Of a DNA stretch of 64,000 nucleotides, positions 15,966-52,100 are shown piece by piece. The DNA lies in assembly GCA_964247055.1 (NCBI GenBank), contig OZ176053.1, positions 12,276,001 through 12,340,000 of the forward strand, read 5' to 3'. Each line of letters starts with the position of its first letter. Position 1 is the stretch's first letter. The position numbers and the translations under genes are program-made. A model generated the notes under the pieces. The model was not told where the DNA came from, ran no database searches, and was given only the letters and a program-made list of their open reading frames with translations. The DNA is from Paragordius varius (taxonomy: Eukaryota > Animalia > Nematomorpha).

Positions 15966-18900
15966 ATGTCCTTAGTGTCTAGTTTAAATCAGGATGGAAA
16001 ATATGCCATAATGGAGACGGATATCGAAAGCAATAAATATTTGCTCAAAAAATATTTTGAAGACATTTACAATGGGTACGGATTTTATAATATTAGGAAA
16101 ACGATATCGTTACATCCTATCTTGCAGCAATATATGGATAAAAATGATTTCAGTATTACGCTAGATGCATTTATAAATATTCCCCAGGTTGCTAATCTGC
16201 AACTTGATTCCCAATGCATTTTAGATTTGATCAAAGGTGTTTATTTATTTTATATCATGTAGCAAATGATCATATCGTGTTTGCCGAGAAAGATACTAAA
16301 ATAATACCTATGTATTCTAGTAGATCCTGCCTTATAGTACGGGATATGCCTAGTCACACCACTTTTCAAGTTTTTGAAATAAATATTTTTAGGATATGCT
16401 AAATATTTTTGAGGGAGTAGAGCCAAAACCTCTTTATATTGAGGGTGTTGGGAATGAATGTTGGTACATTTATTTTGAGAAGCGTTCTTCAGCTAATCAA
16501 TGTTATCTTGTTTTGTTGGCCAAGGATCCAACAATTTCTAATAAAGTATTGCAACTATTGCTTTTGTACAATACAACCATAAAATGATTTAAATTTTTAT
16601 TAATAATTGATTTATTTTGATCTTAGCTAATCGCTGATTTTTGATTAAAGTAATCGATTGGGAGATTATATAATTTATAATTAAAAATGAAAGCATTTTG
16701 CGCCGTGCCTCAATTTCAGACTTAGTAAAATCTATTTGACCTTTCCAAATTATGGCCAATAAATTAATCATTTCTGGTAGAACCTAAATGCTATTAAAGC
16801 GGATTATTATATCCAAATAAAAAAAGTTAGACGCTCCGAATTTTACAAATTTTTAGAATCTTATAGCTAGCGTTTTAAAAAACATGATTAGATTTTTAAA
16901 CGTGCTAAAAAACTTCTTATAAAAATGCCCACTTTGCTTTAAAATTTTAATTTTGTCAATGCTTTTAAACCTACATTATTTTATTTTTCAGCATAGTGGA
17001 GACCCAATAAAAATGTTTTAAGATATAATATCAATGAGGCTTATAACCTAACAATATTCATTAAAGTTCGTTTCCTTGTGAATTTGTTTAAAATTTCCTG
17101 AACATTACACTTATCTTATATTTAACAAATCTCTAAATTAAATTATAGAAAAGTCCATCATTATGAATTATATTAAAAAAGTTTCTATAGAATTTCCACT
17201 ACGCCTTAAAATATGAAAGTTAAAAATTGCCATTATTTAAATATTAAATTAAAATATTTTTGATGTCCATCTAGCATTTATTAAAATGCATATCGAGCAA
17301 TCTCGGTATTTTTCCGAAAAAAATCAGCCCATAAATTCTTATGGAGGCTAAAATTTAAGTTTATTTATTATAATTATTTTTTCTCACTACAGTTTATGAT
17401 ATATTTTAATTTTAAAATTAATCCTTTAGTTTTTACTATAAATTTTATTTATCATATGTGTTCTTCTTTATATGGATTGGATAGCACAAAAGTAGTAATT
17501 ATTTTATTTAATCACTCGTAAGGCCCAAAAACATGAAATCAAATTATATATTTTATCAAGATGTTGTGCATTGTGGATAGTTTATTGTTTTTGGCCTAAT
17601 GGTTTTGTTTTCAATTTTTTTGTTTTAAATGTCTCATAAGCTTCAATACTATAAGCACAATGGCACCCTATATATGTATGTTTTATTTTCTACTAATTTT
17701 GTTTGTACCCTTTCAGTCCAATTTTTAATAAAGAAAATTCGTATTGTTAGATTAACACCAAAATTTAATGATGGTGGCACAAATTTTATTACAGCTTTCT
17801 ACATACATTTTTGTTTTGGTATATAAAATTATGTGCCCGAAATGTATGCTTATCTGGTTAAAACATATAAGGAAACTGTTTTTTAGTGCCCAAAAACTCC
17901 TCCTTTTATTTATATCTTTATTATGCTATTATTGAGTTTCTTTTTGGAGATTCACTTTTTATTGACTTTTGACCCAAAAATGGTGTAAAATTATATTGAG
18001 AAAGTTTGAACGTTTGACCGGTCTAAGCGTTGAATTTGTACTTTTGAAAATTCAATATTCTTTTTTGATTATGTTTCTTAAATAACTTTAATTGATAATG
18101 ATTTAATTTTATTATTAAGATGCGGCCAAAATACAAAGACGCAATTTTACCCGGTAACTTAACATATGCAAAAGCCAAATATAGTGAACAATTTCAAATT
18201 GTTGAAAGCGAACAAAAAGAACAAGAACAACACCCATTTTCTATGTCCCAATCAGGTTTGCCAAATACTTTTTCCTCCTCTGAGCCTATTACTTTAGTTT
18301 TACCCGCAAAGGAGAATCGTAACGCTAATCATGCTGCCACTCCGGCATATAATAACTCAGGTCATCATCAAGGATTCTCTAACATGAATAAAGCCCATTC
18401 TATCGATGTCTTAAATACAGTTACACCCCCTGCTATAATGTATGTAGCTTTATATTTAGTTAGTTATTTACCTTATGTTCTGGTATTTTATTTATAATGT
18501 CGTGTTTTTATATTTTTAGAAAGGATTTGATTCCACCCCAGTTGTCAAATTATGGATTAATAGTCAGTAATAAACAGGTCTATATATATATATATTTCCC
18601 AAAATTTAAGTTGTTTTTGAGAGTTTAATAGATTTTTTGGTAAATTCCTTATTTAATTTAAATTTTCTTAATACATATAATAGCATTATGATGGACAACA
18701 TAAAACTTTGGATTATATTAAGGCATCGTCGAATAATATGTTGTATCCTACCCCACCTTTGCAGCAAAACCAAGCTGGTGCCGGTAATAAGTACGCTACC
18801 AATACCCATTACTTTAACAACAAACAACAGCATTTGGTACCAAATTACAATAATAAAAACGCTCCTTTGGCTTACAAACAACAGCACTTATATCCCTCCT

Positions 18901-49123: not shown

Positions 49124-52100
49124 TTATCGATGTTTACAGCCTTGTCGGCGGAAATGCAAATGTATAAAATAAGCACCACTTTGGTCTTGATCAATATTTT
49201 GGCAAATCTATCAAAAAATATAAAAATATAAATAAATCTCACAGTAGAATATATCAAATTAAATTTTTTACTGTAGTGTTTGGTTTTTGAGATTTTGATT
49301 GCAAAACAAAGAGATAAGAACTCCAGGCATATTGTCCTACAGGTAATCTCCATAAAAAATTTTTGGACACCTATAATTATAAAATTAATTTATGGTTACC
49401 AATATTGTGGGTTTGGTTTCCTTGGGTTTGCACGGTGACACAGAAAAATTAGCTGAACAAAATGTCATTTCATACTCATTTTGTGGATAACTGTAAAGAT
49501 TAGGATAATTTAATAAAAAATATTTAACATATAAATTAGATAAAGTTTATTACTCAAATTCCAACGTCATTGGTAAAAATGGATATGATAGAGGGATTTG
49601 GGCATTAAAATCTATTCTATTTCCACGATTTTCAAGTTTCTCTTGATTGAACAAAAGGTTTTGTCCGATTTCTAACATAGCTATATCTAATGGCAAAAAA
49701 ATAATAATTTTATGTTAAGTTAAACCAAATATTTTAAGTGGACAAAAACACGATCGTATAATTAAATATATAAATGAAATCTTCTTTTCTTAAATCATTA
49801 CTTTACAATATTTTCCCGCATTATTCGTTTAAAGGTTTGTTCAGCACCGCCCCGTGGGTCGTATGCAGCCTGCGAAAAATTTCAAATCTAAAATTTTACA
49901 AGATTCAAGTAAATTTGAATTTCTCAATCTGCGATTTTGGCAATGAACTAGCAAAAATTCTTAAAATAAACAGTGGTTGCAGTCCTATCTTCAATATCTA
50001 ATAAATTATCAATTAATGCTAATACCTTAAAAAAAATATTTCATAAATTTATATTCATTTATTAATTCATCGCCTTTCGTATATAATTTTTAAGAGTAAA
50101 TTATATCATGATATAAAACTTGTAACAGGATTCATTTGCATTGATGCTTGAGTGGGGGATCTTCTAAATTTTTTGGGGTGAAATAATTCAAGATTTGTAA
50201 GTTGCCAAAAACTTCGCTTTATTCGGCGGGTGTGGGACCGTTTATTTCGTTTGTGATGCCTATGGCGGTTATGACGGTTATGATGTTTATGACTGCGATG
50301 TATATGAGAGGAGTGATGATGTCCTATATATGGTTTTTCATGTAGGTTATTATGTGATGATGATAAATTGTGCAAAGTTAAATTATTATTTTGCCTATTC
50401 TTTTTATCATTATTGAGTAATATTGAAATTAGGTCTTGTTCCAACAACATAGATCGATTACTATTACTGCTATTGCTATCCAATTTTTCCGCCGTATATA
50501 TTACAGGGATCCAAGAATCACCATTCTCATCAGGTACAAACAAGTAGTCATTTTCATCTCTAATCGATGGATCATTAATGTTTAAATTGTATAGTGTTGG
50601 TTGGTGAATGTTAGTAAGAGACGGTTTAATTTTCCAAAATGCTGTGGTATGGGCCAACGTTAAGTTTGAAAATTGGTTGTCACTTCCGTATTTTCTTTTA
50701 TTAAGTTTTTTTGGTCCAAAAGTGACTTGATGGTATAGGGGTGATGAAGGTTTTGCCTTACGAGCCGGTAAAACTGAGATAATTGTAAAAGGAGAACTAG
50801 ATTGGACAGAATAATCAAAATTATTGGTGTTTTTTGTCGCAGCCATGTAAGATGATTTATTATGTATAATGGTTGTCAAAGAAACATTGTTGGGTGAAAC
50901 GTAATGGCTTTTGGTCGCCGTATACCAATCTAAACTTACTTCCGTAGAAGAGGGTGTAGTATAATCCAAAGAGTTATCGATCAAAATGTCTTCGTTCCCA
51001 GGCAAATTATTAATATTATGATTATTATTATTATTGGGTAGGAGTGGAGGGGCGGTTGTTGTTTTTGATCTTTTAAATTTCATTGATGATCTATTCTTGT
51101 TTTTGTTAACAGTTATTTTTTGCATGGAATAATGTAAATTCATGTTGGCTTGGATTGTTGAGATACTGGCCTTGGTTGTTATGGAAAATGACTTTTGACC
51201 ATCTATTCATAGTAATTATAATTTTAAGAATAGAGTTAACCTACATGTGCAAACTATTTTGAATTGACCCGTTTTTACCGCCCTATGGTATTTATGTTAT
51301 CCTATGTTGTACAATACTATTTTAGCGCGTAAACGGTGGCAAATTCATTTCAAAAGCAAATAAAAGCTATTTATGTTTAAATGAAGAACACGTTTTTTGT
51401 GTTTATGTTTCTAACAAAATTATATGCCAAACTTATGACTTTTTATAAAAATGTGCTCTCCTGTGATTTTTACACAAAAAACAAGTTTAATGGTATATTA
51501 ATGAAAAATTTTTTTGTAAACATTACCTAAAAGAGGTTTATGAAAACGAGGCATACGACCAGGCTTTATGAAATACGTTTCTGACGCATTGTCACAGCAG
51601 AATTGAGGACATATGGCTTGATGTTGTTTTATGCAAGCTAAGAGATGAGCTGGCAAATTAATTGGTTCTAGATCATCTTTCAATCTTACGAAAGATGTTT
51701 GAGTGGTAAATTGCAAAAGTCTATCTTTCGTTTTAGGCGTAGTTATTTCGCTTAATGTAGTCAAATTTATATCACTATTTTTTATTGGAGAAATGGTAGT
51801 TGACATTTGATTGCTTATTTTATTTTTTTCCAAAGTAGTATCAGACATGCTTCTATACACATATAAAAATATTCATTAATAACAAATGGGAAAAAGTACA
51901 GCAAAACAAAAAATTGATAAATACTATACTTGTTAGATTCAAGAATAGCGCTCGTTACAAATGAATTTTTTGGGGACAAAGTTCTTGGACGATCTTGTGT
52001 TGTAAACAATCTTATAAAATTTGTAGTGCTTTTACTTTTATATCTAGTATTTATATTAAGTATTTGAATATCATTTTCAGTGTATTGCATCATAGTAGGT

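Follow-up and report, generated by a model that had tools for sequence, protein, structure and literature searches.

The window analysed here, the whole stretch of 64,000 nucleotides, carries three genes of an AT-rich genome, namely a LARP4-like gene with a La module on the + strand, and Musashi and MYRF on the - strand, which contain between them seven segments of 23–36 nt beginning with GT and ending with AG. All seven were found at the places and with the lengths that an earlier note on this DNA had given:

16237–16262, + strand: 26-nt segment, LARP4-like intron 1, phase 1
16370–16392, + strand: 23-nt segment, LARP4-like intron 2, phase 0
40222–40246, - strand: 25-nt segment, Musashi, between exon 1 and exon 2, phase 2
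40153–40180, - strand: 28-nt segment, Musashi, within RRM1, phase 1
39912–39943, - strand: 32-nt segment, Musashi, linker between RRM1 and RRM2, phase 0
39783–39818, - strand: 36-nt segment, Musashi, within RRM2, phase 0
49371–49399, - strand: 29-nt segment, penultimate intron of MYRF, phase 0

Retention of any of these segments leads to an in-frame stop, inside the segment or just downstream, or to a frameshift. Their GC content is 0.13–0.22, against 0.31–0.41 in the adjoining exons, and their codon log-odds are negative in all frames; those of the flanking exons (including the three LARP4-like pieces and Musashi exon 1) are positive solely in the proposed frame. In random sequence with the base composition of the window, the probability that a GT..AG stretch of 20–36 nt reopens a frame of the observed length is 0.002–0.066 per junction. 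An A is present 7–9 nt from the 3' end in all seven, a coincidence expected by chance at about 15% (a rough figure based on the A content of the window), and the 3' tails are mostly U-rich. By all DNA-level criteria the seven segments behave as real introns, whose excision from RNA we infer; Musashi sequence words are nearly absent from the listed RNA runs of the species.

Four of the micro-introns interrupt the 5' half of Musashi, which is organized as follows:

39334–40284, - strand: 5' half of Musashi
40284–40247, 40221–40181, 40152–39944 and 39911–39819, - strand: Musashi exons 1 to 4
39782–39734, 39656–39574 and 39402 to about 39334, - strand: Musashi exons 5 to 7
39733–39657 (77 nt) and 39573–39403 (171 nt), - strand: ordinary introns of Musashi

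The spliced product of 194 residues aligns over about 190 residues with 120 Musashi/Rbp6 proteins, at a median identity of 64% and with a median of 0 gaps, and contains two Pfam RRM_1 matches, corresponding to tandem RRMs with the conserved sequence of the family; by homology, the gene is that of a Musashi/Rbp6 RNA-binding protein. Excision of the 25-nt segment forms the conserved Gly of G-K-M-F, and the resulting junction is free of gaps in 68 of the 69 homologue alignments extending 5 residues upstream. As the earlier note had pointed out, this intron still depends on the ATG at 40284 being used. The junctions at the 28-, 32- and 36-nt segments are gap-free in 120/120, 119/120 and 120/120 of the family alignments, respectively. 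Past the 28-nt intron, the Pfam RRM_1 match picks up again at profile position 15; exon 4 has its best PDB match in Musashi-1 RRM2 (residues 4–30); and in the region of the 36-nt intron the RRM_1 coordinates of RRM2 run from 1 to 24 and then from 41 to 67, the gap being filled by a 16-residue exon. A polyadenylated marine metatranscript (L003) keeps an intron where the 32-nt one lies, the codon boundary following ...P-K being identical; the position is thus an old one, occupied by an intron in the transcript of an unrelated marine eukaryote as well.

Assembly artefact, a possibility raised in the earlier note, was tested for Musashi, and all four segments recur in independent DNA contigs of two other samples, of which one is a second sample (X4/X5) and the other comes from an organism under a different label (X3); they are therefore not assembly artefacts. 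Variation was counted over 39568–40330, comprising 512 nt of exon and 198 nt of intron: the exons harbor 4 differences, all at third positions, and zero indels, against 6 substitutions and 2 indels in the introns (Fisher p = 0.005). The 28-nt intron carries a 1-nt deletion (leaving 27 nt) and a substitution in the second sample, and two substitutions in the third; in sample S3, three substitutions affect the 25-nt intron, and the three differences in exon 1 all fall at third positions. GT and AG are unaltered in the variant copies of both other samples. The restriction of exon differences to third positions indicates purifying selection on the Musashi coding sequence.

The 29-nt intron lies near the 3' end of MYRF, a gene that extends over about 49.1–59.0 kb and thus mostly beyond the span 16237–49399 considered in the earlier note, whose end is this very intron:

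49490–49400, 49370–49272 and 49207–49124 (including the stop), - strand: MYRF 3' exons, in the region 49124–49553
49553–49491 (63 nt) and 49271–49208 (64 nt), - strand: ordinary introns of the MYRF 3' end
52181–55396, - strand: conserved core of MYRF, with the NDT80 domain, Peptidase_S74, ICA and the following stretch
238, 80, 99, 80, 392, 78, 411 and 305 nt, - strand: homology-guided introns of the MYRF core

The junctions of the core were obtained by tblastn with the MYRF protein of Gordionus, followed by junction refinement. Pfam matches to NDT80_PhoG (E 1.9e-11), Peptidase_S74 and MYRF_ICA, together with a best match to a Gordionus protein bearing all four domains (NDT80, Peptidase_S74, ICA and the C-terminal MRF_C2), identify the gene as MYRF (myelin regulatory factor). 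The frame shift at the 29-nt segment corresponds to the loss of 29 nt, and removal of the 63-, 29- and 64-nt segments keeps the frame open to the stop, yielding a C-terminus that aligns through the 29-nt junction with Gordionus MYRF (E 6e-15) and with other animal MYRFs. Intron positions are common to the window and Gordionus in 11 of the 11 cases compared. At the three matching 3' positions (63, 29 and 64 nt here) the Gordionus introns measure 2687, 46 and 44 nt, the 46-nt counterpart of the micro-intron standing at the equal aligned codon and in the same phase (0). Positional orthology is accordingly shown for two micro-introns, the 29-nt one of MYRF and the 32-nt one of Musashi.

The two remaining micro-introns separate the first exons of the LARP4-like gene:

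15966–16236, 16263–16369 and 16393–16545, + strand: LARP4-like coding exons 1 to 3, with the ATG at 15966
16546–18119, + strand: long intron of 1574 nt, after exon 3

The 26-nt segment links frame 0, read from the ATG at 15966, with an exon in frame 2; its GC content is 0.19, its codon log-odds indicate no coding potential in any frame, its chance bridging probability is 0.022, and its retention leads to a TAG at 16260. The 23-nt segment (GC 0.13, chance bridging 0.004) links frame 2 with frame 1 and, if retained, leads to a stop at 16400. The individual exon pieces gave zero matches in Pfam, PDB and the protein database; a protein-language-model search placed piece 1 near La clusters (0.87) and piece 3 near RRM clusters (0.83), which are to be taken as leads only, and folding from a single sequence gave a poor model (pLDDT 45). 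Membership in LARP4, with a La motif followed by a LARP4-type RRM, is thus a candidate, unproven assignment, and the case for these two introns is built from reading frame, composition and coding potential. The earlier note had stated that excision of six segments, all but the 25-nt one, restores conserved domain sequence; by homology such restoration is shown for five segments, the 25-, 28-, 32- and 36-nt ones of Musashi and the 29-nt one of MYRF.

About 22 introns of the window were re-derived, of which 7 measure 23–36 nt, none 37–62 nt, and 7 fall at 63–99 nt (63, 64, 77, 78, 80, 80 and 99 nt), the remaining ones ranging from 171 to 1574 nt. The earlier note had reported an empty 37–62 nt range among about 65 introns; the gap persists among the about 22 re-derived here, so that within the window the micro-introns do form a size class apart from the 63–99 nt introns, and their coexistence with kilobase introns is illustrated by the 1574-nt intron of the LARP4-like gene. 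In this one window, two short modes (23–36 and 63–99 nt) therefore stand beside many long introns, and the bulk of the introns is not below 30 nt as it is in the myxobolid or dicyemid type. Six of the seven micro-introns occupy first positions (LARP4-like introns 1–2 and Musashi introns 1–4), the exception being the penultimate intron of MYRF. Micro- and ordinary introns alike have GT-AG ends, are rich in AT and finish with a U-rich tail that closes with TAG or CAG.

Taken together, the seven segments very likely represent spliceosomal introns of the ordinary U2 type with GT-AG ends, shrunk to 23–36 nt in the genome of an animal related to the gordiid hairworm Gordionus. Their most likely ancestors are longer introns that occupied old positions, and we infer their removal from RNA by the standard machinery, probably through intron definition with a normal spliceosome. 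A branch adenosine might tentatively be placed about 7–9 nt from the 3' end, with a short U-rich tail.

How could introns too short for joint occupancy by U1 and U2/U2AF be recognized? A second intron-recognition mode, relying on a modified spliceosome or dedicated factors, would fit the discreteness of the class in the window, with its empty 37–62 nt range, as well as the GTRAGT 5' site being found in 0/7 micro-introns against 4/13 ordinary ones, although this contrast rests on 7 versus 13 introns. In humans, the splicing of short introns (about 56 nt) can depend on SPF45 in place of U2AF as 3' splice-site factor (10.1101/784868), which is the kind of mechanism the earlier note had proposed, at an intron size of about 56 nt versus 23–36 nt here; a similar idea was raised by tapeworm authors, who speculated on altered splicing or export machinery (Tsai et al. 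2013, as quoted in PMC4040987). However, the ends, composition and tails of the micro-introns are like those of the ordinary introns, and the 64,000-nt window contains neither snRNA genes nor splicing factors. Precedent does not require such a mode either: myxobolids, with median introns of 22–27 bp, retain U2AF1/2 as well as a U2 snRNA whose branch-site region is canonical, and in both myxobolids and Dicyema introns as small as those of the window are described as being spliced by conventional machinery (PMC13644364). We therefore regard a second mode as unlikely. We see an equally small chance for the broader proposal of a hairworm-like lineage with a discrete 23–36 nt class at ancestral positions, mainly at gene 5' ends, in which early spliceosome assembly would have to be altered to fit a distance of about 10–25 nt between 5' site and branch, perhaps through a U2AF-independent or specialized factor, so that two modes would operate in one animal while Gordionus keeps the same introns at 44–62 nt.

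Other readings question splicing itself. Real introns that are often retained, so that expression is slowed or switched through their splicing efficiency, would be in line with the premature stop arising from every retained segment and with the inefficient splicing of extremely short microsporidian introns noted in PMC13644364, but conserved genes under purifying selection need a good share of productive mRNA, and this reading appears improbable. Still less credit can be given to the segments being insertions or indel-shifted coding sequence in artefactual or decaying genes. Homopolymer errors do occur in long-read assemblies of AT-rich DNA, and as frame 2 stays open through the 26-nt LARP4-like segment, a 1-nt indel error there could in principle provide an alternative frame link mimicking the frame switch. 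Two frame errors 130 nt apart, each at a GT...AG stretch of GC 0.13–0.19 devoid of coding potential, are nevertheless unlikely, gap-free homology is regained at five junctions, and the Musashi segments, flanked by exons with third-position differences only, are found in independent contigs from three samples. Finally, somatic DNA elimination occurs in some nematodes, and elimination of the segments at the DNA level would dispense with RNA splicing; the GT-AG ends, the positional orthology with annotated introns and the presence of the segments in each of the four DNA data sets examined make it extremely improbable.

Introns of 23–36 nt are rare yet already known in animals, and the uniqueness implied by the earlier note was overstated, as short and ordinary modes beside kilobase introns have been published for parasitic flatworms. 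According to PMC4040987, introns of Gyrodactylus salaris have modes at about 32 and 58 bp, the short one prevailing at intron positions 1–2, and 69% of them exceed 100 bp; bimodal short introns also occur in tapeworms (citing Tsai et al. 2013). Like the window, these flatworms combine two modes below 100 nt, a short mode at first positions, and many introns from above 100 nt to kilobases, and parasitism is a further trait in common. They differ in belonging to another phylum (the present genome being that of a relative of Nematomorpha), in a short class that lies lower here (23–29 nt in 5/7) and in an ordinary mode that lies higher (63–99 nt), bearing in mind that about 22 introns are compared rather than a genome-wide census. 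Myxobolids and Dicyema japonicum share with the window GT-AG introns of 20–30 nt in conserved genes and at conserved positions, an A a few bases before the AG, and parasitism, and a highly repetitive genome, as described for Myxobolus rasmusseni, is a further resemblance; but there ultra-short is the median of all introns, while here it is a minority beside 63–99 nt and kilobase introns (PMC13644364). In ciliates, mini-introns of about 25 nt in Paramecium and 15–16 nt in Stentor (PMC5014332, PMC13644364) show that such sizes are within the reach of a canonical spliceosome, although tiny introns make up the whole or nearly the whole set in these organisms, whose lineage is unrelated to animals.

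A survey of 51 animal genomes (September 2026) found introns below 30 bp in myxobolid cnidarians and one dicyemid only, and hairworms are unnamed in its text (PMC13644364). No report of ultra-short hairworm introns was found, the word 'intron' being missing from the searchable hairworm genome papers. Given both, a hairworm relative would add another independent animal origin of introns below 30 bp, the first known to us in Ecdysozoa. Gordionus sp. m RMFG-2023 (GCA_954871325.2) resembles the window in its MYRF intron positions and in GC content (0.28 in the locus compared), but 9 of its 17 MYRF introns are short ones of 44–62 nt, the range that is empty here; standard gene finders may miss anything shorter, so that Gordionus may have such introns too. 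Paired with its 46-nt counterpart in this sister genus, the 29-nt intron lends itself naturally to a comparative study of the limits of intron shrinkage and of the factors that determine the smallest size. As default gene finders and read aligners pass over introns so short, gene models and completeness scores of such genomes may be wrong at these very genes.

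Seven GT-AG segments of 23-36 nt, read in the earlier note as ultra-short introns of three genes, lie exactly where that note had placed them in the window sequence, and all seven start with GT and end with AG. These micro-introns, with the frames and larger introns around them, are the following.

Micro-introns and associated features (window-relative coordinates)
15966-16260, plus strand, first reading frame of the LARP4-like gene, from ATG at 15966 to a closing TAG at 16260
16237-16262, plus strand, LARP4-like micro-intron of 26 nt, phase 1; excision connects the first frame to the next
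16370-16392, plus strand, LARP4-like micro-intron of 23 nt, phase 0; unless it is removed, the second frame ends at 16400
16546-18119, plus strand, next LARP4-like intron, ordinary, 1574 nt
40246-40222, minus strand, Musashi micro-intron of 25 nt
40180-40153, minus strand, Musashi micro-intron of 28 nt
39943-39912, minus strand, Musashi micro-intron of 32 nt
39818-39783, minus strand, Musashi micro-intron of 36 nt
After these four, minus strand, two ordinary Musashi introns, 77 and 171 nt long
About 59.0-49.1 kb, minus strand, MYRF, mostly beyond the end of the span stated in the earlier note
49399-49371, minus strand, MYRF micro-intron of 29 nt, penultimate in the gene, between introns of 63 and 64 nt

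Any of these segments, if kept, introduces a stop or a frameshift. They have a GC content of 0.13-0.22, compared with 0.31-0.41 for the exons flanking them and 28% for the window, and in a codon log-odds model trained on homology-verified exons versus verified introns, all of them score negative in every frame, while the three LARP4-like exon pieces and Musashi exon 1 are positive in the proposed frame only. Judged from sequence, the seven taken as a whole are very probably real introns.

The Musashi gene provides the most extensive comparison. The spliced product of 194 residues was aligned with 120 fetched Musashi/Rbp6 proteins (median identity 64%, median gaps 0), and each junction was scored by whether the alignment is without gaps inside ±5 residues: this is so in 120/120 alignments for the 28-nt junction, 119/120 for the 32-nt, 120/120 for the 36-nt, and, counting alignments that extend 5 residues upstream, 68/69 for the 25-nt junction. 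With the 25-nt segment spliced out, the Gly belonging to the conserved G-K-M-F is formed, Pfam RRM_1 coordinates run continuously between successive exons, and the top PDB match of exon 4 is Musashi-1 RRM2. In L003, a polyadenylated marine metatranscript carrying a Musashi gene, AAG/GTAAGC directly follows the same P-K as at the 32-nt position and gives way to unspliced sequence; by this sequence, the position is also an intron there. The metatranscript (L003, 1032-1977) terminates in this retained intron directly after the RRM1 linker; P0159, the product of a sister contig, is spliced at the linker position, and has unspliced-looking sequence after ...N-R-H-R-G, the site of the 77-nt intron of the window. 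Words of the Musashi stretch are next to absent from the RNA runs X6-X10.

DNA runs X4 and X5 (sample S3, a second sample under the same species label), X3 (another organism label) and X1 were compared with 35001-41000; all their contigs are DNA, with introns present. All four Musashi micro-introns occur in contigs of S3 and of X3, and since these contigs are independent, the segments are not assembly artefacts. Differences between S3 and the window, counted over 39568-40330, fall unevenly (Fisher p = 0.005).

Differences between S3 and the window, 39568-40330
Exons: 512 nt, 4 substitutions, 0 indels
Introns: 198 nt, 6 substitutions, 2 indels

The four exonic substitutions are all at third codon positions (3 synonymous, 1 Glu to Asp), the 28-nt intron is 27 nt long in S3 through a 1-nt deletion within a T-run, and X3 adds 2 substitutions within the 28-nt intron and 1 within the 25-nt intron; GT and AG ends are free of variants in both. 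In candidate Musashi exon 1, 3/3 S3 differences are third-position, and the adjoining 25 nt carry 3 substitutions, which speaks for translation of exon 1 and so for the 25-nt intron being real. S3, under the same species label, differs from the window by about 1.5% over this stretch, and X3, under its other label, is still 95-99% alike; closely related species or wrongly labelled samples may account for this.

MYRF, recognized in the window by its NDT80_PhoG, Peptidase_S74 and MYRF_ICA domains, allows a comparison with a second hairworm. When searched exhaustively, the ICA exon matched best, at 71% identity, with a protein from Gordionus sp. m RMFG-2023, to which the spliced C-terminus aligns through the 29-nt junction (E 6e-15), as it also aligns with MYRF C-termini of other animals (e.g. 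E 1.6e-7). Gordionus introns were obtained by mapping the annotated protein back onto its MYRF locus (L001/L002), and the window junctions were then refined against Gordionus. All 11 window positions compared are shared; Gordionus has one additional intron of 139 nt, which the window does not have.

Lengths of MYRF introns at the 11 shared positions, in order (nt)
Window: 238, 80, 99, 80, 392, 78, 411, 305, 63, 29, 64
Gordionus: 1697, 62, 815, 60, 49, 126, 77, 61, 2687, 46, 44

The 29-nt intron thus lies at the same aligned codon as a 46-nt Gordionus intron, both in phase 0. The five micro-introns with homology support, considered on sequence grounds, are in all likelihood real. Neither the Musashi nor the LARP4-like gene was found in the Gordionus MYRF locus extended by 10 kb. 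The longest annotated Gordionus product there (L002 10001-87485, 1685 aa) joins an unrelated upstream part of 487 residues to MYRF across a 41.8-kb "intron", and looks like a fused gene model.

For the LARP4-like gene, single exon pieces had no match in Pfam, PDB or the protein database, and AlphaFold, given exon 1 as a single sequence, produced a low-quality model (pLDDT 45); protein-language features, which place piece 1 near La clusters and piece 3 near RRM clusters, are the sole support for the name, so that LARP4 is a putative family label. Frame 2 stays open through the 26-nt segment. A formal alternative, applicable to this gene alone, is that its two segments reflect single-base assembly errors, but this would take two errors separated by 130 nt, both coinciding with very-low-GC GT...AG stretches. 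Chance was evaluated in simulated random sequence of window composition, as the frequency with which a GT..AG segment of 20-36 nt near an exon end reopens a frame of the observed length: it amounts to 0.002-0.066 per junction, and about 1e-4 for both LARP4-like junctions jointly. The two LARP4-like segments are quite likely to be real introns. Two very long single exons (18708-20726 and 22108-23637, plus strand, 672 and 509 codons), of low complexity, rich in Pro, Asn, Ser and Thr and without Pfam match, appear to be part of the same gene, as an "inflated" protein.

An ORF-bridging scan of the whole window for further micro-introns returned many false positives: a 27-nt MYRF candidate (52341-52367) is merely the 3' end of the 305-nt intron, those at 22110-22140 and 36948-36979 resemble, by inspection, acceptors of longer introns, and the flanks of 8910-8936 look intron-like.

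Do these introns form a distinct size class? Among about 22 introns re-derived in this one window, seven measure 23-36 nt, none 37-62 nt, seven 63-99 nt (63, 64, 77, 78, 80, 80, 99) and the remainder 171-1574 nt; an even spread of 14 lengths across 23-99 nt would leave 37-62 nt empty with a probability of about 0.003 (by simple arithmetic). The gap asserted in the earlier note holds in this set, which covers only part of its total of roughly 65; many of the latter come from a liprin-alpha-like gene (1900-12400, plus strand; one coiled-coil exon plus three that are SAM-like, identified by eye only), outside the re-derived set. In Gordionus MYRF (L001 56490-79485), 9/17 introns are 44-62 nt long, the very range that is empty in the window, in an annotation where gene finders possibly missed shorter introns; the matching window positions (49100-55400) hold introns of 29, 63-99 or several hundred nt, and none of 37-62 nt. 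The "ordinary short" mode is not the same in the two hairworms.

Introns below 30 bp are reported among animals only from myxobolids and Dicyema, where the U2 branch-site region is still canonical and U2AF is retained (PMC13644364, Sept 2026); the text of that paper does not mention hairworms. The closest known pattern is that of parasitic flatworms: Gyrodactylus salaris has two intron modes, at about 32 and 58 bp, the short mode prevails at positions 1-2, and 69% of all introns are longer than 100 bp (PMC4040987). In the window, 6/7 micro-introns belong to the first introns of their gene. PMC4040987 also notes bimodal intron lengths in tapeworms, and earlier speculation that splicing or export machinery was altered. 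The pattern described in the earlier note, two size classes coexisting with long introns, thus has a precedent. The word "intron" is absent from the two hairworm genome papers searched, in which Gordionus montsenyensis is described with 26.93% GC and 63.8% repeats. Taken together, the micro-introns represent a known kind of phenomenon, now in a new phylum.

Micro- and ordinary introns alike are AT-rich and bounded by GT and AG, and both have U-rich tails that finish with TAG or CAG. A GTRAGT 5' site is present in 0/7 micro-introns and 4/13 ordinary ones, a sample too small to weigh, and each of the seven micro-introns carries an A 7-9 nt before its 3' end; since this would be expected by chance in about 15% of cases (rough estimate), a fixed branch adenosine is not claimed. 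No snRNA genes were found within the 64-kb window. The most economical reading is that introns would have shrunk at old positions and be removed by ordinary U2-type splicing through intron definition; the second recognition mode proposed in the earlier note would, as precedent suggests, not be needed.

Other features of the window include repeats and candidate transposon remnants. Word depth rises up to 100-fold or more in all DNA runs at 37000-37600, 38400-38800 and 40600-41000, with many short "skip" joints at about 37120-37460; the sequences are repeats of high copy number, some of them tandem or variable, located within the Musashi gene and next to it. A series of overlapping 60-118-residue reading frames with shifting frame (25890-27500, plus strand) looks like a decayed DNA-transposon transposase, and an open frame of 154 residues (33063-33524, plus strand) resembles a LINE-type reverse-transcriptase tail, antisense to and adjoining low-complexity minus-strand reading frames at 33773-35380.
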